Below, piece by piece: positions 47,206 to 61,800 of a stretch of 64,000 bases of DNA (positions are counted from its first letter, which is position 1; each line of letters begins with the position of its first letter). The position numbers and the translations under genes are program-made. This DNA comes from Setoptus koraiensis (Eukaryota; Animalia; Arthropoda). The notes under the pieces are model-generated. The model searched no databases, was not told where the DNA came from, and saw only the letters and a list, made by a program, of their open reading frames with translations. The DNA lies in NCBI GenBank assembly GCA_048013815.1, contig CM106585.1, positions 3,906,001 through 3,970,000 of the forward strand, given 5' to 3'.

Positions 47206-49008
47206 ATGAGTACGAGCCCGGAAATCACTAAAACCATGGATGATGATAATTTAGATAAAAACAAAAAGTTATTCCCGCAAAAACTTTGGGAACTCATTCA
47301 TGATGAACGATATCAATCGTGCCTTCGCTGGTCAGAAGACGGTCACCGGGTTTATCTAAATAGGGAAGACTTTGAGGAGAGCTATCTCAAAAAGCCAGAC
47401 CAAAATCAATTTAACACTCAAAAGGCTATCTCATTCGTACGACAAATGAACATGTACGGCTTCAAGAAAGTAGATGATTTCTATTATGAAAATGAAAATT
47501 TCAAACGCGATTCACCTGATTCGCTGAAACGTATGATTCGCCGACATCCAGCTAGAAATTCAGACTTCATAACGCAAGAACTACTTAACAATAATGATTA
47601 TGAGATAAGCACAAACAATTTTATGAAGGCCAATAACAATAGTGTCTTTATCAACACCACCAATAATAATAATAACAACAACAACGCCAAGCTATTAACT
47701 AATAGCAACAACAAAGACAATCAGGACACTCAAGAAACGGACTACACAATAAATCATTGTTCGCCAACACGTTCACCAACTTCGCCCATACCCTTGTCCA
47801 CCAACGCCAACAACCATTTAGTGCCATATACTCAACCTAGCGATAGCTTGAGGGTTGGCCATTATGACTCTATCTCTCCCCAGAACATGGGAACCGATGA
47901 GGAAATCATGCAAAGAGGCCATTGGACACTACCCCAGGATAAGTCTATGTGTACAGCCGAAGAGGTACGCCGAGGGCAGCGTATTAATGGTGTTCCACGG
48001 AACAAGTGTCCAATAATTGGATGCAATAAGAGAGTTAGTCCTACAAATATCTATCCAGCACTGATATCACACTTATATGGTTATCATTTTAGTGGTTTCA
48101 ATTCCTACACGAGATACCATAATCCAAAATATTGTCGCCTGATCCAAAATAGTTCCTGGAGCGATAGAGTAGATGAAATGCATACAGTCCATGATAACAT
48201 ATCACACCAACGAAATCCCGCAAATTTATCCCACGATAGCTACGGGTTCATGAATTCATGTGTCAGAAATGATAATAATAATATCGATCCTGGAAATACG
48301 CATGGTAGCGATGAGGATCTAGAACATAATAATAGGGAAGATATAAGTGAAAATTCCGGTGGTCATAATGATGATGGTGATGATAATTATCAGGAGGACT
48401 CGTTGAACTCTTACTCTCCTACAATGTCGAATCTTAGAAAACGTAATCTGATACAGACGCATTCATCTTCAACATGCTCACCATCGAAGATGCTCAAGCA
48501 TCAAAGGCAAATTCTGCAGCACCAACAACATCAACAGCAGCAGCAGCAGCAACAACCTCAGGATCTATCTAATCATTCTCATCAAAATCAAAGATTGAAA
48601 GCAAATTTGAAAGTAGAATCGCCAAATAACCAAAATTTTGATAATGGCCCGTTTAGTTCCTCTGGTCAAACTGGATCATTGTGTCAGGGCTCTTTTTTAC
48701 CTTCCCCTCAACTTAATTCAATTGCATCCCAACTGGTGAAGAAAATTTCTGACCAGAGAGAAGTGAAGTTAGATTTGGGAGCCTCTATTGAAGCTGAAAA
48801 GTTTGCGGAAAAATTGTTATTTACTCTCATAGACGACGCTGCAATGATTGTCGAACATCAAAACGAATCGAAATCACCTCCGATAGATAAAAACAATAAG
48901 GAGATGCTAATTGACGCTTCAAGTCTCACTTTAGCTCTCAAATTTATGCCTTCCAGACTAGCGGCAGCTTTAAACGAAAAATCCATCTCCCAAATCAATC
49001 ATACGTAA
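47206..49008 (+). CDS. HSF-type DNA-binding-domain protein (divergent, HSF5/HSFY-like) with putative atypical C2H2 finger and C-terminal H2B-like histone fold
   Basis: Single 600-aa ORF. The N-terminus has FPQKLWELI...LRWSEDG...SFVRQMNMYGFKKV...FKRDSPDSLKRMIRR, matching the HSF DBD signature. No obvious HR-A/B heptad repeat. Confidence 0.85.
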   Translation: MSTSPEITKTMDDDNLDKNKKLFPQKLWELIHDERYQSCLRWSEDGHRVYLNREDFEESYLKKPDQNQFNTQKAISFVRQMNMYGFKKVDDFYYENENFKRDSPDSLKRMIRRHPARNSDFITQELLNNNDYEISTNNFMKANNNSVFINTTNNNNNNNNAKLLTNSNNKDNQDTQETDYTINHCSPTRSPTSPIPLSTNANNHLVPYTQPSDSLRVGHYDSISPQNMGTDEEIMQRGHWTLPQDKSMCTAEEVRRGQRINGVPRNKCPIIGCNKRVSPTNIYPALISHLYGYHFSGFNSYTRYHNPKYCRLIQNSSWSDRVDEMHTVHDNISHQRNPANLSHDSYGFMNSCVRNDNNNIDPGNTHGSDEDLEHNNREDISENSGGHNDDGDDNYQEDSLNSYSPTMSNLRKRNLIQTHSSSTCSPSKMLKHQRQILQHQQHQQQQQQQQPQDLSNHSHQNQRLKANLKVESPNNQNFDNGPFSSSGQTGSLCQGSFLPSPQLNSIASQLVKKISDQREVKLDLGASIEAEKFAEKLLFTLIDDAAMIVEHQNESKSPPIDKNNKEMLIDASSLTLALKFMPSRLAAALNEKSISQINHT

Positions 49009-49344: not shown

Positions 49345-50320
49345 TTACAGTCTGCAATTGAATCCACCGCTAACGCAGATATTTTCCCCAGAAATGAACG
49401 ACGCGTCATCACTACACAAGAAGCTACAAATGCCCGCTACTTCATGCGGCTGTCCCAAACGTTTAGCATCTATGACATTCATCATGAATTCAACGGCGGC
49501 ATTGGTTGTTATAATTTCACTAAATGCCGTTTTGATAATACCGGGCGCAACATTGTTAACTCTAATACTTTCTTTAGCCAATTGCGCTGATAGCTGTTTT
49601 GTCAGTCCACACAATGCTGTCTTGGATACTGCGTACATTCCAATACCCATCGTAGATGAATATCCTGCGACTGATCCAATAAATATGATCGATCCACTAC
49701 CATTATTTCTCATATGGGGCACTACTTTTTGAATAAGAAAAAATCCTGCTTTGAGATTAACATCAAATATCTTATCGTATTGGCTTTCAGAAATATCCAA
49801 TATATCACCAACATGAGGATTAACAGCTGCATTAGAGACAAGAATGTCTATCTTTCCATATTGTTGAATGGTAAAATCTACAAGTCGCTGTCTGTCTTCT
49901 TCTTTTCCAACATGACACACAATACCTGAAACATCTTCTAATTTGTATGATTTAAGCTCTTTTAAAGCCTTGTCGACGTTTTTCCAGTTTCTGCTGCTTA
50001 TCACCACTTTCGCTCCATCAGTGGCAAGTTTTCTCGCGATAGCAAATCCAATTCTATATAGAGGAACAGAAAATTGTGCGACGGAAAGTGATGTTTACCG
50101 TCAATGTCATCATAACTTAGGTGGATTTATTCCCGAATCGAGACGAGACTTACCCTTGTGTCGAGGCGGTCACGATGGCGACTTTATTTGCTAGCCTTGT
50201 TGATGGAACATAAATCAGGGAAGAATCAGGAACTGCAGCGGCATACCGAGAATATTCCTCCCAAGAGTTCGACTCGAGGTCTCGCAACTCTTTTAGTTTT
50301 TCACCCGCGTTCACGTTCAT
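49345..50320 (-). CDS. DHRS4: Dehydrogenase/reductase SDR family member 4 (peroxisomal NADPH carbonyl reductase); exons 50320-50154 and 50053-49345, about 291 aa
   Basis: LANKVAIVTASTQG|IGFAIARKLA is joined across a 100-nt GTAAGT...TAG intron (50153-50054). Also has VSNAAVNP, YAVSK (YxxxK), IRVNNVAPG and a C-terminal CRL PTS1-type signal. The exact start codon is uncertain. Confidence 0.92.
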
Positions 50321-51882
50321 GATCGTAAAATACAATTTTGAATACTTGAGAAAAGTGACGCTACTGTGTTGCTATAAGTTTTCGTGTCAACGGAAGTTGA
50401 ACGATTGGGCGAATCGTTTATCGAGAGCTATCTTAGACTTTCAGTCATCATTATTGCTAACTATGGAAATTGCTCGAGAACGATTGTCGAGTGGACGCTT
50501 AATCTAACATCAGTTGGTGCTTATCATCTCATTTATACTAAGATTACTTACATATGGAGAGCAATGGTACTGCTATAACTGATTTGAATACAAGAGCTAA
50601 ATGAAACTGCAATCATTGGTTCAACTTGATAGCTAACAGGCAATCAACAAATGTTTCTAATACTCTGCGCTCATATTCTGTCATTACATCATAAAAGTAC
50701 GGACTGCGGCTGGAGGTATCAGCAGATTTCCACACGGTACAGGGATGTATACTGGGATTGAGTTATGAACGCACCACAAGGGGGTGTACACTTAGTTATG
50801 TGAGCATGCTTCATAACCGGTTATCCGTTGATGAGATAGCCCATTTGATTATCAGATGTCCTTGAACAAATTCAACTGTATCTCGTGTCTATCTAACAGT
50901 TTTTTGTTTGTTGACTTTTGGGGTATTCTCGAAAGCTTGGAACTAATCATTAGGGTGATCAAGCTTGCCAGGCATAATATTTTTATGTTGTACACCCATT
51001 AAATTCCAACAGATTTTTTTGTTTCCTCTTTGATTTGCTTGCCCTTTTATTTGATTTGCTGCTGTTCATGTTGACATAAGAAAATTTTCCGCGTTTCATT
51101 GTACAGATCTTTGATTAGATGCATCTCCGACATTGGCACCATCGTGTCGTGCAATCTAAGGCCAGACTGAGACTCACGACTCCATGAGGAACTTTACTTA
51201 TGATTATTTATTGAATTCAACCATAAACTTGTGAAATGGATTTTTTTTTCTTCGCTAGTCTCTCATTTTCTACTGCCTCTGTTTAATAGGATCCTTAGCT
51301 AGTGGGGAGATAAAAAATTAACTCAGAGAGTGGAGGCTAGAGATACCGACATTTCAAATTTCCAAATACAAAACAGATTTGATTATCGACTCACAAGGCA
51401 ACCTTGGTGATCATAACTCTCGGCTTTTTTCCCAATGGGTCTATCCTGTAATCTCGACGAGTCGCTCCGAATCGGTATAACCATTTACTCGTTTTATTTT
51501 TCGTTCCTGGAATATTCTGGTCTTTTCGGGACCTTGCGCATGTACCAACCAGAATATTGCGAAAACGAAGGCAAAAACGGATAAATGGTTATCCGTATTC
51601 GACTCGATCGTCGGGATATGCAAGAACGGACTTATTGAAAAAAAAAACTCCGAGAGTTGAGATCACCTAGGTTATATTGTGAAAGGAACAAGCGACGTTG
51701 ACGCCCAGCTGTCTTGGCGAGGTTGGTGATGACCAATAACTTATCTTTTATCTGTGGATTTATTAAAACAACCTCACTACCTCCAGGCCGAACTCACCAG
51801 AATGTCCCTGCTACTAGGTTGTCTCATAAGTAACAAGAGGCCCACTCACTGACGAACTTGTTAGAGATCAATCATACAAGTC

Positions 51883-52700
51883 TCAATAGTACTTCAGAAA
51901 TGGATAAACATCGAATGCCATGAATGTCCAGTCATTTGTTATTAGCATTACACTAATAGTGGCGAGGATTTGTTCGCATCGCAGTTTGCACCAAACGTAG
52001 ATATTACCCGCGGCCTTAGCACAATTATCGGCTCTCAGTATCGTCGTGTAGCCTAGACCTAGAGGTAAATTCATAGAAGACTGGATGTGTTCGTGAGTAG
52101 GAAACAATCTATCACGGTTACAACTGACCAACACTAGACCGAGTTAATTTTACAATATAAAGCGATGATGCATTCGAATGACTACCATTGATTCATTCTA
52201 GCTCGTACGCCCAACAAGTATTCTTTCAAGAGATTCATGCTGATTATATTCTAAAATCATCTGTTGAGCTCTTGGTTATTCGATCGACAAATAATTCCTG
52301 ATTGTCGCTTGTGGCTTTTGCTTTACAAATAGAGCACCCAATATTCCGCCGGGTGATATATCCCGGTTGTACTATTCCGAAGGGAATTTCAGTTCCCTTT
52401 AGCTATTGATTTGTATCTCGCCAACCTCGTTTCATAACTTCAAAAATAAATATTGCCAGTATGCACATTATCACAATGTCTAAACTACAGATCGACTCTT
52501 GGAAATTTCGCTTGTTTAATACTCTCTATAGAGCAGAGTGTTACAGTGAGGGTAGTACTCTTGTGAAAGATTTTCATTTGAGTGGTGCAAACGTCGAACC
52601 CATCTCAACATCAGGGTGACATTCCAACAATTTATCTGTGCGAACCAGAACGAATGGTATGAGCATTTCGCATTTCTTCGCTATATAATCAGCCTCGAGA
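51883..52700 (-). pseudogene. 5'-truncated, disrupted fourth copy of the PAICS-like gene
   Basis: Minus-strand fragments KKCEMLIPF..CHPDVEMGSTFAPLK*, CSIESIKQAKFPRVDL*, FEVMKRGW and SSMNLPLGLGYTTILRADNCAKAAGNIYVWCKLRC match the intact copies but contain stops and frameshifts. No exon 1 or promoter block. Confidence 0.8.
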
Positions 52701-52754
52701 CCAGGAACATGATCACAAAAGTACCTCAGTGGTGAATGAACTTTTTGACTATCG

Positions 52755-54046
52755 TTATCTTTCTTCTCTTTTTATGCGCGGTCCTCTTCCTCTTGACGAT
52801 CTACCTATCGCAGCTATGGTTCGTTTCCATTTCATTTTGCACCAAACATAGATATTATCATTGGCCACGATTTGGGCTGCCGCCCTGGCACAATTATCTG
52901 CTCCTATTATTGTTGGGCAGCTAAGGCCTGGAGGAATATTCATCGATGACAAGACTTGCTTGCTGGTCCTCGCATGTGGAAAACAATTTAAGACGGGTAT
53001 ATCCGAATTTAAGGCCAACAGTTGGACCAGTAAATTAGTTTTACAAGATATCGCTATAATACATTTGCATGATGGCCATTGATTCAATCTAGATATTGTG
53101 TCCAACAAGCACTGGGTTGATCCATCAACTGAGCAGGTAATATTCTCAATTTGGAAAATTCCCCAATTCTTATTCAAGCTCTTGATTATCTCAAACGCAA
53201 ACGGTCCATGTTCGATGCTTGCGTTCAAATCCATCAAGATTGCAACTGATGGCGAAGATGTCGAGCGTAACTGTCGATTATCCGCGATCAAAGATTTTAA
53301 TCTCTTCGCCACGGATGAACTGTGAGTATATTCGTCAATCATCTGAACGAAGACTTCTCCTTCGTGGTCTATTCCAAATTGTACCTCTATCTCCGCTATG
53401 GAGCGAGACATGTGCTGCCATACACGTTCCATGACTTCGAATACAAGTCTCGACAGCGTGTACATTCTTTCAATATCCACATCCTCCAGATCGAGATTTG
53501 GAAATTCTGCGTGCTTTACACTTTCAATCGACCAGACTGTTCGATTTAAGCTAGCATCCAAATGGAATACTTCCACCTGCAATGTTGGGAACCTGGTGCC
53601 CTCTTTCACATTGGGGTGACGTTGTAAGAAATAAGGCGTTGCCTCGCGTGTAAGAACCCATCTAAGTGGCACTATTCGGCATCTCATCTCTATGAAACCC
53701 TCGTCCATGCTTGGATCATATTTAACAAATGTTGTAGGTAAGCCAATAAAATTTAGAAATTCAAACAGACTAGCGTCCGCGCGTATGTTCTGAGAGGTGT
53801 CGTCAGGATCATCATCATACAAAGGCACAACAAACCAATGATCGTCACGGTCCTCAAGTTCATAGAAACGGGAAAATCCATCATCTGCGATCAATTTTCC
53901 TTTGACTGCCAAGAAATTGTTGAAACAAATAATAACGATTGACAACGATGTGGTTGAAATAATTTTTGCTATACAGCGATTACTCGAATGAGTTATGATT
54001 AGTGGTGCCATATTCCGACTTGAGACTGTCGGTTGAACTTACCCAT
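52755..54046 (-). CDS. PAICS (SAICAR synthetase + AIR carboxylase)-derived protein, copy A, catalytically degenerate; exons 54046-54043 (ATGG) and 53905-52755, 384 aa
   Basis: RCRIVPLRWVLTREATPYFLQRHPNVKEGTRF resembles PAICS [59 protein letters not shown] resembles SSLRLPSGLGCSTV..FAAQI..NHLVWSKL. A 137-nt ATGG|GTAAGT...CAG|TC intron gives MVKGKLI. Confidence 0.85.
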
Positions 54047-54915
54047 TTTCACAAGACTCTCCAGCGGATATGTGACGTATCCTTCAGCGTAAGTTATGTG
54101 GAAAATTATGATTATTAGTGGTTTCTAATCTAGATCGATCTCCTGCGACAGTCCTGTAGTTCCTCGGAACTTCAATATTTACTTTTAATTGTTTGGCGAT
54201 TCAAGTCGACAGGCAAAAGCAAATGACGTTGGCTGAAACATGCGAATCTTTGTTGTAGGAACAAAGCAGCGTTGCGATAGCCTCGGTCATGGCGCCAATG
54301 AAGGCATGGCCAAGCTTAGTTCGTCTTGCACAGAAGTTGGGCAATGCACGAGATGAGTTCACCGTTTATTTTGTGCTTAGTCGTTGGTTACCACCGGCCG
54401 AATAGAGCGATGCACGGGACAACGAAGAATTGTAACCGGAAGTAGTAATCATATGCGGCATTTAATAAATGCCATCTATTGAATTGGCTCTCTGGCTTTA
54501 TTTGCTGAAATTTTAGTCACTCCAGGCTATCATGTATTTTTGGTTGTGGTGTTGCATGGTTAGGCACGAGAGCTCTCCATTGGTGCATAAACCGACGTTG
54601 GCGAGATATACAAAAGTCAGTGATACATGGAAAGTAAGCCATGCAATCGGTACTTAGGCCAGTTTTCTCGAGACCCATCAACTGGTTGAATAGAACGAGC
54701 CGATGGGAACCAACGAAAAAATCTGTGATAGAATTTCGACCTCGAGTCGTCCTAATGGTTGATCAATGATCATCATTGAGTGACTGGATTAGTTTGACAA
54801 GAAATTTATTTGTGGTCACACATTGATACGTTGTAGGCAGGACGGCTGTACACACACTGGTTATTTTGCTGGTTGGGGAACTAAACTTTGTCAGTCGTAT
54901 GATCACAAAAGTACC

Positions 54916-56213
54916 TCAATAATGAATCAGCTTATTGACTGCCTTCGATCCTATTCTTTCTGTTGACAATCTATCTAACGCAGCTAGGGTCCGTTGACAT
55001 CTCATTTTGCACCAAACATAGATGTTATCATTGGCCACGATCTGAGCTGCAGCCTTGGCACAATTATCTGCTCCTAATATCGTTGTGCAGCCAAGCACTG
55101 AAGGTGTACTCATAGAAGACCAGACTTGCTCGCTGGTTGTCGCATATGGGAAACAATTTATCACGGGTATTTCCGAATTTGCGCCCAACACGTTGCTGAG
55201 TAAGTTATTTTTATAAAATATGGCGATAATACATTTGCATGTTGGCCATTCATTCAATCTAGCTATCACATCCAACGAGCACTGGGTTGATTCACTAACC
55301 GAGCAGATAATCTTTGCAGTTTTAAAAATTCTCCAATTATTCTCCAAGCTCTCGGTTATACCCTTAGCAAGCGATCCATATTCGATGTTTGCGTAAGAAT
55401 CCATCAAGATTGCAACTGATGGCGACGATATTGACTGTGGGGGCTTATTTTCCGATATTAATGATTTTAACAACTTCACCATCTCTGTTGCTGAGCAGGA
55501 ATATCCAAAAATGCCCTTCACGATGATGCCTCCCTCTTGTTTTACTCCAAATTGCATTTCCAATTCCTTCAATGGTCGATTTAAACCTTGCCACACTCGT
55601 TCCATAACTTCAAAAACAAGTCTTGCCAGCGTGTACATTCTTTCAATGTCCCCATCCTCCAGATTGAGATTTGGAAATTCCGCTTGCTTAATACTTTCCA
55701 TAGACCAGAATGTTCGATTGAAGGAGGCATCCAAATGGAATGCTTCCACTTGCAATGCTGCGAGCCTAGAACCTACCTTCACATTGGGGTGACGTTTCAC
55801 GAAATCAGACGTAGCCAGGCGCGTAAGAACCCATACAAGTGGCACTATTCGGCACTTCTTCTCTATAAGACCTGAGTTCATACTAGGATCATACTCAACA
55901 AATGCTGTAGGTAATCCGATAGAATTGAGAAATTCAAACAGAGTAGCCCTCACACCTGCCCAATAGAAACGCCCAGGTTCAATTTTTTCCGCCAACCAGT
56001 AATCCTCTTTTCTCGCACAGTCAAGTTCATAGAAACGATAATATCCATAATGTGCGATCAATTTTCCTTTGACTGCCAAGAAATTGTTGAAACAAATAAA
56101 AACGATTGACAACGATGTGGTTGAAATAATTTTTGCTATACAGCGATCATTCGAATGAGTTATGATTAGTGGTGCCATATTCCGGCTTGCGCCTCTTGGT
56201 TGAACTTACCCAT
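54916..56213 (-). CDS. PAICS-derived protein, copy B; exons 56213-56210 and 56072-54916, 386 aa
   Basis: Same motifs, and the same 4-nt first exon plus 137-nt GT-AG intron as copy A. Reading frame intact. Confidence 0.85.
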
Positions 56214-57090
56214 TTTTACAAGACTCTCTGGCGTATATGTGACGTATCCTTCAGCGTAAGTTGTGTGGAAAATTATGATTATTAGTGGTTTCTAATCTAG
56301 ATCGATCTCCTGTGACAGTCCTGTAGTTCCTCGGAACTTCAATATTTACTTTTAATTGTTTGGCGATTCAAGTCAACAGGCAAAAGCAAATGACGTTGGC
56401 TGAAACATGCGAATCTTTGTTGTCCGAATGAAGCGGCCTCGATCATGGCGCCAATGAGCACATGGCTGAAGTTAGTTCGTCTTACACAGAAGTTGGGCAA
56501 TGCACGAGACGAGTCCATCGTTTATTTTGTGCATATTCATAGGTCATCACTGGCTGAATGAAACGAGGCTAGCGAGAAGAGTATGACACTAAACAAAGAG
56601 GAAGTGTGAACGAAAGTAGTGATGCAACACATTATTCAAATATGCGGCGTTCACTGAATTGGCTCGCTGTCTTCATTCGCTGAAAGTTTAATCACTCCAG
56701 GCTATCGTGTATTTGTGGTTGTGGTGTTGCATGGTTAGGCACGAGACCTTTCCATTGGTGCATAAACCGACGGTGGCGAGATATACAAATGTCAGTGATA
56801 CATGGAAAGCAAGCCATGCAATCGGTACTTAGGGCAGTTTTTTCGAGACCCATCAATTGGTTGAATAGATCGAGCCTACGTGGAGCAACAAAAGAAAAAT
56901 GTATGATAGAATTTCGACCCCAAATCGCCCTAATGATTGGCCGTTATCGAATCGACTGCATTAGTTTGACAAAAAAATGTATTCGTGGTCACACAATGAT
57001 ACGTGATACGCAGGATGGTACACTGCACACAATGGTTGTTATGCTGGTTGGGGAGCTAAACTTTGTCAGTCGTATGATCACAAAAGTACC

Positions 57091-58387
57091 TCAACAATGA
57101 ATGAACTTATTGTACGTCTCTGATTTATCTTCCTCTTCTAAAATTGTATGTATCGCAGCTAGGGTTCGTTGGCATCTCATTTTGCACCAGACGTAGATAT
57201 TATCATTGGCCACGATTTGAGCTGCAGCCTTGGCACAATTATCTGCTCCAAATATCGTTGTGCAGCTAAGGCTCGAAGGTATATTCACAGGGGACCAGAC
57301 TTGATCGCTTGTCGTAAGTGGGTAACAATTTATCACGGGTATGTCTGAATTTCCAACCAGCACTCGGCTCAGTAAATTACTTTTACAAGATATGGCAATT
57401 ATACATTTGCATGATGGCCATTGATTCAATCTAGATATTGCGTCCAACAAGCGCTGGGTTGAGCCATCAACCGAGCAGGTAATTTTTGCAATTTTGAAAA
57501 TTCCCCAATTCTTATTCAAGCTCTTGATTATCTCAAACGCAAACGGTTCTTGTCCGAGGCTAGAATCAAAAAATATCGCGATTGATGGCGCAGATTTTGA
57601 TTGTGGTGGCCTATTTTCCGAGACCAATGATTTTAACAACTCTTCTATACCCATTTCTTCGCGGGGATATCCTGAAATTCTTGTCACGATGATTTCTTCT
57701 GCTTCTGTCTCTCCAAAGTGAACTTCAATTCTCTCCAATGATCGATTTATACCCTGAAACACTCTTTCCATAACTTCAAAGACGAGTCTTGCCAGGTTGT
57801 TCATTATTTCACTATTCACTTCCCCCAGATAGTTAATTGGAAATATTGCATGTCTAATATTCTCGTGAGACCAGATTGTCCGATTGGACGTAGCACACAA
57901 GGGAAAAGTTTCCACTTGCAATGTTGGAAACCTGGTGCCCTTTTTCACATTGGGGTGACGTTCTACGAAATCAGGCGTTGCCAAGCGCGTGGGAGCCCAC
58001 ACAACTGTTACCATTCTGCACTTCTTCTCTATAAGACCTGAGTTTATATTCGGATCATACTCATCAAATGATGTTGGTATTCCAACAGATTTCAGGAATC
58101 CAAACAGAACAGCATCCCTACGTGCATTCTCCACGGGATCCCCAAGTTTAGTCTCAACAAACCAACGATCTTTCTTCCAAGGAATTTCATAGATACGATT
58201 AAACCCATCGTCTGTGATCAATCTGAAACTGACTGACAAGGAATTGTTGGAACAAATAATAACGATTGACAATTATGTTACAATTATGTAATTGGGATAA
58301 TTCTTGCTACATAAAGATCTTTTGGATAGATTATGATTAGTGTAGCTGCCTCATTCTGGCTTGAGCCTCTTGGTTGAACTTACCCAT
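57091..58387 (-). CDS. PAICS-derived protein, copy C; exons 58387-58384 and 58232-57091, 381 aa
   Basis: Same motifs, and the same ATGG|GTAAGT first exon with a 151-nt intron. Reading frame intact. Confidence 0.85.
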
Positions 58388-60336
58388 TCTCACGAGACTC
58401 TCTAGCGGATATGTGACGTATCTTTCAGCGCAAGTTATGTGGACTATGATGATTATTAATAGTTTCTATTCTAGATCGATCTCCTGTGACAGTCCCGTCG
58501 TTCCTCGGAACTCCAATATTTGCTTTTAATTGTTGGGCGATTCAAATCGACAGTCAAAAGCAAATGACGTTGGCTGAAACATGCGAACCTTTGTTGTCCG
58601 AACAACGTAATCTTTCGATAGCCTCGATCATGGCGCCAACGAAAACATGGCCAAGTTCGTCGTGCATAGAATGCACGAGATGAGCCCACGGTTTATTTTG
58701 TGTTTAGTCGTTGGTTGTCACTAGCCTAATAGAACAAGGCCAGCCAGACAAGTGCGACACAGAACGACGAAGAGTTGTAAACGAAAATAGTAATCTAACC
58801 CATCATTTAAATGTGCGGCGTCGATTGATTTGGCTCGCCGGCCCTATTTGCTGGAAATTTAATCTCTCAAAGCTATCCTGTACCAGAATACGTGCCAAAA
58901 TAGATTGCTAGCGATATCATTCTAGGAGTTATTGTTCGAGCGCAAAGCGCTCCGCCAAAAGGTAGGCGTCTAGCCGGCGCCGTTGTTTGTCTATGCCGGA
59001 AACGAGCATTACCTCAGCGATTGCCGTGCTCTTTTTGAGGAAAAAGAAATTCTCACCAATCGAGTAAATCAGTCTGTTTATGGGACTGGAAATGGTTTTG
59101 CAATCAATTGCACTCACAACAGTTGTCAGTTGACATTTTAAATAATTGTCGCTCGCATTTCAGTTGTATGTCAACTACAGAGACTTTTCGTTACAGTGCT
59201 TGCCCCTCAACAGCCGATATGCGTTGCAAAAATTGAACAAATAATGCGCGCATCTACATAGAAAATATTCCTGCCGCCGACGAATGTTTTTCTGCAAATA
59301 TTATTCAAACAAACAGTGATATGGCACTGCAGTGCGAACACTGTATCGTGTATCACAATACATCATAATGTATTGCTACATCAAAATCAAAAAGTGGCTT
59401 TAATTGAATTGCAAAAACGCTACTGAATATCTGAAAAAGAGGGTGTCGTCTAGATGCGATGTTCTAGAACATCCACCTGATTATGGCTACCTGGTGGGTG
59501 TAAATCGACGGCTTCTTTGTGATGTATTTTGCGTTGTACGCCATTTTCCAAACATACACGGATATTGCAGAACAGATTTATGTGTGAATCTTTGCACAAT
59601 AAACCTTCTCTTGAGAATTCGTTGTATTACACAACAACAACGGCAACAGCATTACCAACGACAACAAAAACAACAACAACAACCCATCCACCGCCGCATG
59701 CCGTATACTGTATCGTAGTGAGTGTGTGGTATGGAAAACAACTGTTCCATTTCTGCGAATCGTAAGTCCAAAGAAAAGAAACTGCGCTTCATTTGCGTTA
59801 CTGTCTTATCGGGCAATTCTTCTTTTCCTTCACATAATAATAATGCCTCGGTGTCAAAAGAAGGAACCATTGCATGACGCCGTGTAGAATCTGTAAGCGG
59901 CACAACAGCTGTTCGAAGAAAACCAAACAAACAAGACGCAGCATATTCAACCAATCAAATATTATTATTTGTTTGATTATTGTTAATTTATCAAGATCAA
60001 ATTACATTGTTAGCCTGTCTCATTCTCTACTGGCTGAATCAGCAATTTATATGGATGGTAACAAACCGACTAACTCACCACTATTACTATTATTATTATT
60101 ATTATTATTTAATGGTATGCGTTCGTCCGATCCAACTCAATCAAACAATATCACAAAATTCATATGAAATAGGAAGAAAACAATATTGGACACCACATAC
60201 TACAGTGCTTGTATCAAGTCAATCATAGAAACCAATAATAATAAATGATAACGCAATAGATAGTTGTATCTGACGTGTGTGATGACCATCAGCATATATT
60301 TTGTTGCTAGGCCGAACAACAACATTTATTCTACTA

Positions 60337-61800
60337 ATGGAGGCCAGAGAGAGCGCTATCAAAGCCCATATGGCCAGATATGAGGACAAATATACCGACT
60401 CAAGACAGTTTAGGATATTTGTGGGCTCATGGAATGTCAATGGTCAATCGCCGTTCGCCAATCCGATCGACGCTTGGCTCACCTGTGATCCCTTCCCTCC
60501 TGATGTATATGCAATAGGTTTTCAAGAACTAGACTTAAGTCGTGAGGCATTCCTATTTAATGATTCCCCAAGGGAACAAGAGTGGCTGAAAGCCTGCAAT
60601 CTAGGATTACACTACAAGGCCTCTTACGTGAAGGTGAGATTAATTAGACTGGTGGGTATGATGTTGATAGTGTTTGTTAAAAAGGAATTAGAGCCACACG
60701 TTACAAATGTAGCAGCCGAAACTGTTGGTACGGGTCTTATGAGAAAGATGGGCAACAAAGGTGGAGTGGCCATTCGTTTAGAATTGCATAATACGTCCAT
60801 TTGTTTTGTAAATAGCCATCTGGCGGCGCACGTGGAGGAATATCATCGTCGCAATCAAGATTATCATGAAATATGCTCAAGGATTGTATTTAATCAATTT
60901 CAACCTCCTAAATACATTAAAGATCATGATCAAATTTATTGGCTTGGAGATCTCAATTATAGAATAGATGAGCTAACCACAGAGGAGATCAAGGCTATGA
61001 TTGACCAAAAAGCCTTTGATGTACTTTTGTTGCATGACCAACTTAGGAAACAAATGGCTGCACAAAGAGTGTTCGTTGGCTACAATGAGCCCTGCATAAA
61101 CCATTGGCCCACTTACAAGTATGACACTGGCACAAACGAATGGGACACGAGCGAAAAGAACCGGCCACCAGCGTGGTGTGATAGAATTCTGTGGTCTGGC
61201 GGACCTACTCAGCCAATTATTTACAGAAGCCATCCAAAATTATTACTTAGTGATCACAAGCCCATTAGTTGTTTATTTAGTGCCTCTATCAAAGTGGTAG
61301 ACACCGTCCGTTATCGTCGTGTCTATGAGGATGTAATGAAACGATTAGACCGCTTGGAGAATGAATTTCTTCCACAGATATCATTGGACAAATTAGAATT
61401 TATATTCCAGAACGTTGAATTAAGCGAGCCAGCAGTTGACATTGTAACAGTGGCCAACACTGGCCAGGTGCCGGTTTATTTTGAATTTATCAAGAAATTG
61501 AATGATGAGGCCTATTGCAAATCATGGCTGCAGATCAGTCCCTTCTCTGGGCTAGTTATGCCTGGCGATACGCTCGACATTGAATTCAGGGTTTGTGTAG
61601 TTGCAAGGGACGTACCTGAGGACAATATTAGTCAGATGATGATTACAAAGGCTACCACATTGGACGACATACTAGTGTTGCATCTGGATCGTGGCAAGGA
61701 TTTATTTATAACTGTCAATGTCAACATGAGGGTGCAACAAGATACAGTGGCGGACGCCGAGACGCTAGCCGCGCTCGAGACGCCACTGATAACTTTTTGA
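60337..61800 (+). CDS. OCRL: OCRL/INPP5B-type inositol polyphosphate 5-phosphatase (5-phosphatase + ASH domains; no RhoGAP domain seen; 5' end uncertain)
   Basis: FVGSWNVNGQSP, DVYAIGFQELDLS, RLVGMML, GNKGGVAIR, WLGDLNYR, PTYKYD, PAWCDRILW and SDHKPI are 5-phosphatase motifs. NTGQVP..F.FI.KLND..YCK.WL and DILVLHLDRGKD are ASH motifs. Possible splice acceptor at 60310. Confidence 0.92.
   Translation: MEARESAIKAHMARYEDKYTDSRQFRIFVGSWNVNGQSPFANPIDAWLTCDPFPPDVYAIGFQELDLSREAFLFNDSPREQEWLKACNLGLHYKASYVKVRLIRLVGMMLIVFVKKELEPHVTNVAAETVGTGLMRKMGNKGGVAIRLELHNTSICFVNSHLAAHVEEYHRRNQDYHEICSRIVFNQFQPPKYIKDHDQIYWLGDLNYRIDELTTEEIKAMIDQKAFDVLLLHDQLRKQMAAQRVFVGYNEPCINHWPTYKYDTGTNEWDTSEKNRPPAWCDRILWSGGPTQPIIYRSHPKLLLSDHKPISCLFSASIKVVDTVRYRRVYEDVMKRLDRLENEFLPQISLDKLEFIFQNVELSEPAVDIVTVANTGQVPVYFEFIKKLNDEAYCKSWLQISPFSGLVMPGDTLDIEFRVCVVARDVPEDNISQMMITKATTLDDILVLHLDRGKDLFITVNVNMRVQQDTVADAETLAALETPLITF

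Follow-up and report, generated by a model that had tools for sequence, protein, structure and literature searches.

Why would a mite keep a row of intact genes for PAICS, the purine-biosynthesis enzyme that joins a SAICAR (succinylaminoimidazolecarboxamide ribotide) synthetase to an AIR (aminoimidazole ribotide) carboxylase, when nearly all the residues needed for catalysis are gone? The question is raised by a stretch of 64,000 nucleotides from Setoptus koraiensis (assembly GCA_048013815.1, contig CM106585.1, positions 3,906,001 to 3,970,000 of the forward strand; hereafter the window), where three such genes, here called A, B and C, lie head to tail on the minus strand. PAICS is highly conserved, single-copy in almost all animals and a drug target. 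A first reading of the DNA, to which we refer as the original prediction, had proposed a lineage-specific family of non-catalytic PAICS derivatives, amplified in tandem and kept open by selection. We find that A, B and C are folded, catalytically dead and selected paralogues of the mite's own PAICS, and that two further copies, D and E, lie beyond the window. The explanation that we favour as a whole, and consider probable, is that these genes form a lineage-specific set of dead PAICS paralogues, maintained by selection, which would work as non-catalytic subunits of oligomers. Their kind is known, being that of a pseudoenzyme derived from a well-known enzyme; what is new is a PAICS-derived family in this mite lineage.

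Fold and active sites of the copies

Genes A, B and C are intact and encode proteins of 384, 386 and 381 amino acids, in keeping with the three two-exon genes of 381-386 residues originally described. They share one layout, in which a 4-nt coding exon (ATG+G) is followed by a GTAAGT donor, an intron of 137-151 nt ending in AG and a second exon that holds the remainder. Homology searches were made with exon 2, which comprises all but the first two codons of the protein. The three products match the Pfam families SAICAR_synt and AIRC weakly (16-44 bits), and the SAICAR_synt match of copy C, at 16.5 bits, falls under the cut-off for that family; among structures in the PDB they match silkworm PAICS (1e-34) and human PAICS (4e-28; entries 4ja0 and 2h31). 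AlphaFold models of A and B have a mean predicted local distance difference test (pLDDT) score of 92.2 and 91.2, respectively, and a Foldseek search with model A returns human and silkworm PAICS (6yb8, 4ja0 and 2h31) as the top matches, with template modelling (TM) scores of 0.79-0.82. The order of domains, SAICAR_synt then AIRC in one chain, is that of PAICS. The Pfam and PDB matches, the AlphaFold models and the Foldseek search all agree with the claim that the overall SAICAR-synthetase plus AIR-carboxylase architecture is kept, and the PAICS fold is predicted to survive in the dead copies.

The state of the two active sites was read at 42 residues, namely those in the AIR carboxylase (AIRc) and SAICAR synthetase (SAICARs) active-site models of human PAICS from a quantum-chemical study (PMC9376930), which we mapped through the mite's own canonical PAICS, with the human numbering confirmed by HMMER alignment. 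Each of the five dead copies keeps 7-9 of the 42. The survivors are mostly structural (Ser301, Asn333, Leu335, Ile328 and Met272), with Ser301, Asn333 and Leu335 present in all copies. Within the SAICARs half, the ATP loop Gly16-Lys17-Thr18-Lys19 has been replaced by DGFS, YGYY, DGFN, DEWC and DDWC (A to E), and the Mg and phosphoryl-transfer residues Glu97, Lys131, Asp137, Lys191 and Glu193 are substituted in all five copies. Neither of the segments that bind carboxyaminoimidazole ribotide (CAIR) and aspartate (Thr40-Asn43 and Asp207-Arg232) is preserved, the T-A-G-N loop (Thr40-Asn43) and the Asp212-Arg232 substrate clamp being deleted in 5/5. The AIRc half has fared no better: in A to D its phosphate loop, G-S-x-S/A-D, has turned into DLNAS, DSYAN, DSSLG and DENRD, and E has lost the loop by deletion; the Ser301-Ala-His303-Lys304 motif has become SVDG, SVSE and SVDG in the three window genes, while D and E read SVHE and SAHA; and the A-G-R-S-N-G-L loop has become SCKTNLL, FYKNNLL, SCKSNLL, CNESNAL and CHESNAL (A to E). 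The general base His303 is thereby Asp, Ser and Asp in A, B and C and survives only in D and E, and Lys304, Gly330 and Arg331 are substituted in every copy.

All the motif changes listed in the original prediction are seen when the copies are aligned to the genome's own canonical PAICS, with some corrections of detail. The segment DSWRLW...KQ is indeed deleted, at a size of ~40 residues and not 30-35, and a second deletion, of the SKDRITAGDG loop (10-14 residues), had not been reported. The replacement of the AIRc phosphate loop likewise stands, but the parent loop in this mite is GSKAD and not the GSTSD of the canonical motif list. Beyond the active sites, the copies keep 34-42 of the 112 columns that are invariant in 18 canonical PAICS proteins from mollusc to mites. 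Only 3 columns are fixed in the degenerate family yet differ from the parent, and the replacement residues at active-site positions are not conserved among the copies. The essential catalytic residues are therefore missing, as is expected of a pseudoenzyme, and both sites are lost as had been supposed, with the Mg ligands, ATP loop, CAIR/aspartate clamp and AIRc phosphate loop all gone. From these sequences we strongly infer that A to E are unable to perform either PAICS reaction.

Compared with active PAICS/ADE2 proteins (2h31, 6yb8 and 4ja0), the mite copies are true homologues that share the same two-domain order, the C-terminal helix, a predicted fold match with a TM-score of ~0.8 and, in the case of the mite's own PAICS, the position of the first intron. 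They differ in that 33-35 of the 42 active-site residues are replaced or deleted, in lacking two substrate-binding segments (~10-14 and ~40 residues), in having gained a new C-terminal tail, in evolving 7-14 times faster than the parent gene and in numbering five instead of one.

Parent gene, origin and array dynamics

A search of the whole genome (48.8 Mb, 2 contigs) found one canonical PAICS with all motifs intact, on the other contig (C2:21794084-21795310), so the copies in the window are not the only PAICS of this animal and have an active homologue in the same genome. Intact degenerate copies D and E were found ~41 kb past the end of the window. ATIC and GART are each single-copy, such that PAICS alone has been amplified in comparison with these two. 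The canonical gene begins with ATG+A, a GTAAGT donor and a phase-1 intron, and its exon 2 starts ..KGKLIAEGKTK. Its 4-nt first coding exon and the phase of the intron are identical in all six genes (the canonical gene and A to E), which are therefore duplicates made at the DNA level and not retrocopies; a retrocopy origin is ruled out by the shared first exon and intron. Canonical PAICS adjoins an ITFG1/FG-GAP-type gene both in this genome (L001, 2244-3389, minus strand) and in a sister species (L010, 7621-9618, minus strand). This adjacency in both species marks the parent locus as syntenic, which means that it was the dead copies that moved.

A maximum-likelihood tree groups the five dead copies in a single clade (100/100). 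This clade is sister to the pair made up of the mite's own canonical PAICS and P0001, the PAICS orthologue of the sister species (Logan run SRR33593474), and lies inside an eriophyoid clade (100/98) that includes Aceria tosichella, whose PAICS is, among named proteins, the one most closely related to the canonical protein. Around 10 further Logan proteins carry the same signature as canonical mite PAICS. The stem of the dead clade has a length of 0.72 and its tips 0.32-0.61, as against 0.04-0.06 for canonical genes. Catalysis was lost once, in the common ancestor of the five copies, because both deletions are common to all of them. An approximately unbiased (AU) test of duplication before versus after the split from the P0001 species gave p 0.395, which favours neither order.

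Word-index searches of 5.8 billion proteins found no relatives of the dead copies and returned canonical PAICS only; a profile search of 1.84 billion representatives likewise found none, with canonical PAICS as the best match (227 bits), and an exact look-up of the genomic open reading frame of copy A in public assemblies gave no record. On present data the degenerate family thus appears confined to one eriophyoid mite lineage, and the suggestion of a lineage-specific family is borne out both by the clade in the tree and by the lack of relatives in the protein searches. The mite is a plant-feeder of the eriophyoid type. The family is young, and a birth-and-death process has enlarged it in two tandem arrays. 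In the window the tandem amplification is plain: A, B and C sit side by side with a broken fourth copy, in head-to-tail units of ~2.17 kb.

Copies within an array have also exchanged sequence. Identity among A, B and C is 86-93% in the 5' flank and 78-97% in the intron, and 72-75% in the coding sequence, where each codon position (66-80%) lies below both flank and intron; differences between the copies affect 25-28% of coding nucleotides and ~40% of residues. Synonymous divergence (dS) among the copies, at 0.5-0.6, is likewise greater than the non-coding divergence. Sites that support AB, AC or BC groupings are clustered (235 runs compared with 303±10 expected; 0/5000 shuffles as low), and because the informative sites come in blocks the copies must be mosaics. 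Between D and E, a homogenised tract extends 90 codons into the coding region, with the proportion of synonymous differences (pS) near 0. Gene conversion of the 5' part is likely the simpler cause of the similarity of flanks and introns, and we prefer it because synonymous sites are as diverged as the rest of the coding sequence, which selection on the protein cannot explain. Diversifying selection as an explanation of the conserved promoters was set aside in favour of gene conversion on these grounds, the mosaic sites and the synonymous divergence. The possibility that the 5' flank is a repeat, a mobile element or an RNA gene was also rejected, as it occurs only three times in the genome and Rfam reports nothing there.

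Selection on the dead copies and what they may do

Selection was measured by pairwise Nei-Gojobori estimates of the ratio of nonsynonymous to synonymous divergence (dN/dS) with bootstrap intervals. Comparisons among A, B and C give a ratio of 0.49-0.54, the D/E pair gives 0.62 and comparisons across arrays (the deep A-D and B-E pairs) give 0.34-0.46, and the intervals exclude 1; for the parent gene against P0001 it is 0.083, at a dS of 0.54. Purifying selection on the dead copies is therefore real and about six times weaker than on the parent. We also simulated neutral substitution at half the pairwise dS, 4000 times per copy, and in none of these runs (0/4000 per copy) was the frame still open, while the five real frames of 381-397 codons are open at a per-lineage neutral distance of ~0.25. 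The broken neighbour, with its stops and frameshifts, provides an example of an unselected copy. The claim that the genes are kept open by selection is upheld by these ratios and simulations, and an open frame under purifying selection is again what a pseudoenzyme should have. Constraint is unevenly spread along the protein. It is weakest in windows at residues ~28-45, ~190-200, ~225-250 and from ~352, which fall on the loops of the former active sites, on the linker between the domains and on the C-terminal end; there the local ratio of the proportions of nonsynonymous and synonymous differences (pN/pS) is 1.2-1.4. It is strongest over the C-terminal half of AIRc, with a local ratio of ~0.2-0.6. 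For that half together with the last helix, pN is 0.06-0.19; the last helix alone has a dN/dS of 0.11-0.5, with wide bootstrap intervals.

This distribution of constraint bears on how the dead copies may act. The PAICS octamer is obligate, and its core consists of the AIRc halves together with the C-terminal helix. These are the parts best preserved in the copies, and for this reason action as oligomer subunits is the most likely mode, judging from sequence and fold. Loss of the last helix impairs octamer formation by human PAICS (PMC12229671). The history of the family can be summarised as follows. The mite's own PAICS was duplicated at the DNA level and the common ancestor of the copies lost both active sites, parting with the ATP loop, all Mg ligands and the CAIR/aspartate-binding segment in its SAICAR synthetase half, and in its AIR carboxylase half with the Ser-Ala-His-Lys motif, the AGRSNGL loop and the loop that binds phosphate. 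Expansion into two tandem arrays then followed, through birth and death and, in all likelihood, gene conversion between neighbours, with the fold kept, the frames under purifying selection and a flexible C-terminal tail gained. The dead copies would now act without catalysis, probably as subunits of oligomers.

The tail ends in hydrophobic and aromatic residues and is present in B, C, D, E and the broken copy (..LIHY, ..FIHC, ..LIFY, ..PIYY and ..KYY; in longer readings ..NKLIHY in B, ..NKFIHC in C, and ..GLIFY and ..RPIYY in L002/L003). Canonical PAICS is without it. Copy A has lost its tail through a frameshifting insertion of ~20 nt near the 3' end (window positions 52755-52800), and the old tail can still be read downstream in another frame. 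AlphaFold models it as disordered in the monomer (pLDDT 44-62), which fits a short docking peptide.

What kind of oligomer the copies might enter can be pictured in several ways. They may assemble among themselves into dead oligomers with a scaffolding or binding role, a possibility that we hold tentatively. By analogy with prozymes, they may instead co-assemble with the single active PAICS into mixed octamers and so tune it, which is possible though doubtful. It is rather unlikely that they are exchangeable subunits of the active octamer that set its activity or its recruitment to purine-synthesis assemblies, with the tail as docking peptide; dead subunits could set enzyme activity in this way because AIRc sites are built from several subunits.

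Several observations weigh against the reading of the copies as selected oligomer subunits. A dN/dS of around 0.5 is high, and with one copy already broken and the C-terminus of copy A frameshifted, part of the family may be decaying. The searched collection of 5.8 billion proteins holds no transcript-derived A, B or C protein. The split between the arrays looks older than that between the species (dS between the two arrays is 1.1-1.7, as against 0.54 to the sister species), yet no copy was found in the sister species' data. Finally, active-site loops sit at the contacts between AIRc subunits in PurE and PAICS structures, and the changed loops could disturb assembly.

Among the other explanations to be weighed is a fast-evolving family engaged in conflict or host interaction, much as in the tandem pseudokinase arrays of parasites, in which a dead scaffold would serve as a variable binder or decoy with diversifying selection on its loops. 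The tandem arrangement, in which copies have been gained and lost, would suit such a family, and so would the windows of pN/pS >1 (at the loops of the former active sites, the linker and the C-terminal end), the coding sequences less alike than flanks and introns, and protein branches 7-14 times the length of the parent's. However, dS is itself above the non-coding divergence, a pattern that gene conversion of the 5' part explains and protein selection cannot, and the copies are mosaics, with the homogenised D/E tract entering coding sequence where pS is ~0. With 3-5 sequences, an excess in any one window cannot be called statistically secure, and the protein starts M-V-K-G-K-L, with no signal peptide; we therefore judge this explanation improbable. 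There is also a small chance that the genes are functionless duplicates in slow decay, whose pairwise purifying signal is the legacy of an earlier functional period. The ratios of 0.5-0.6, the broken neighbour and the recent C-terminal frameshift of copy A would all be expected of decay. Against it, five frames are open where no neutral simulation left one open, the ATG, GT and AG signals are retained in all five intact copies, and dN/dS is below neutrality even in the deep pairs; moreover, with catalysis lost in the common ancestor, comparisons within the family measure selection on a dead protein.

It is very unlikely that the copies have remained enzymes, whether through weak PAICS activity or through a new reaction in remodelled pockets. 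Their fold is intact, three active-site residues (Ser301, Asn333 and Leu335) are universal and D and E retain His303, all of which could be taken to favour a surviving activity. The Mg ligands and ATP loop are nevertheless replaced and the substrate clamp is deleted, every copy has lost the AIRc phosphate loop, Lys304, Gly330 and Arg331, and mutations of His303 alone abolish complementation (PMC9376930). A newly defined active site is likewise difficult to reconcile with substituted residues that are not conserved among the copies and with just 3 family-fixed columns that differ from the parent. An assembly artefact, be it uncollapsed haplotypes or a mis-assembled repeat, is scarcely credible: the head-to-tail units and their very similar 5' flanks might suggest one, but the copies differ too widely in coding nucleotides and in residues, their C-termini differ and so do the flanks at the array ends. 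The divergence of ~40% between the proteins also answers the concern that the genes might be haplotigs.

Comparable systems and features of the array

The selected dead subunits that we favour here have their closest parallel in the prozymes of trypanosomatids, which are catalytically dead paralogues of S-adenosylmethionine decarboxylase (AdoMetDC), deoxyhypusine synthase and PRMT1 and form hetero-oligomers that activate the enzyme (PMC5201418; PMC3663545). In both cases the enzyme is metabolic and obligately oligomeric, and selection keeps a dead paralogue of it beside one active copy. The differences are that hetero-oligomers have been shown for prozymes and are a proposal for the mite copies, that the mite's active PAICS seems fully competent by itself, and that the dead copies of the mite are multiple and in tandem. 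A second parallel emerged from the profile search in the form of amphibian paics.2 (Xenopus laevis paics.2.L, XP_018085579, and an ADE2-like protein of Ranitomeya variabilis). This too is a degenerate PAICS-derived gene beside a normal one, with several catalytic motifs eroded and part of the same SAICARs segment shortened. Its origin, however, is independent and in vertebrates, and it is far less eroded than the mite copies, retaining GRSNGL or GGSNGL and having SAHT or SAFT in place of SAHK. Two frog-type proteins, P0017 and P0021, carry a fused N-terminal extension of 400-580 residues, and P0027 (374 residues) has none. The statement that PAICS is normally single-copy consequently needs qualification. 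The Logan protein P0036 (418 residues) is also PAICS-like, with an apparent signal peptide, CCVHT for SAHK and no GRSNGL, and is possibly another independent dead PAICS. Our literature search found no paper on PAICS-derived pseudoenzymes or on eriophyoid purine genes, nor any on the function of paics.2, which is apparently unstudied.

The family offers a natural test of what the PAICS scaffold does beyond catalysis, in octamer assembly, partner binding and possible regulation by dead subunits. It is also a clean and datable case of pseudoenzyme formation, with one parent, five dead copies and one corpse in a very compact animal genome. Were the copies to prove exchangeable subunits of the octamer, de novo purine synthesis would have its first known case of control in the manner of prozymes, and animals would provide an example of a regulator that is multi-copy and fast-evolving.

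Table 1. Features of the degenerate PAICS array, in window coordinates. The A of each ATG is at 54046 (A), 56213 (B) and 58387 (C).
Feature	Position	Strand	Remarks
Broken fourth copy (pseudogene)	51943..52720	-	matches profile positions 55-191, 254-314 and 310-367 in three frames; frameshifts, several stops
Last open piece of broken fourth copy (open reading frame)	51883-52134	-	
Gene A exon 2 including stop TAA	52755..53905	-	product 384 aa
Gene A intron (GTAAGT...GGCAG), phase 1	53906..54042	-	94% identity to gene B intron
Gene A exon 1, coding part (ATG+G)	54043..54046	-	layout as in canonical PAICS gene
Gene A 5' flank (promoter and 5' untranslated region)	54047..54346	-	identity 93% to B, 86% to C
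Gene B exon 2 including stop TGA	54916..56072	-	product 386 aa, tail ..NKLIHY
Gene B intron	56073..56209	-	
Gene B exon 1, coding part (ATG+G)	56210..56213	-	
Gene B 5' flank	56214..56513	-	homogenised with A and C flanks
Gene C exon 2 including stop TGA	57091..58232	-	product 381 aa, tail ..NKFIHC
Gene C intron	58233..58383	-	
Gene C exon 1, coding part (ATG+G)	58384..58387	-	
Gene C 5' flank	58388..58687	-	

The three genes correspond to long open reading frames on the minus strand at 52755-54011, 54916-56178 and 57091-58272 (Table 1). The span of 51883-58387 first assigned to the three intact genes is correct at its end, which is the ATG of gene C, but its start belongs to the broken fourth copy. 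Short open reading frames in the spacers were rejected as coding, the frames differing between copies. The sole Rfam match, a weak one to a plant microRNA at 51477-51592, is far under threshold, and a scan for bacterial promoters and terminators, of a type that is uninformative for a eukaryote, showed no excess over shuffles. No neighbour of the array is linked to purine metabolism: on one side lie genes for an HSF-type DNA-binding protein (47206-49008, plus strand) and a short-chain dehydrogenase (49345-50007, minus strand), and on the other a gene for an OCRL-like inositol 5-phosphatase (60301-61800, plus strand).

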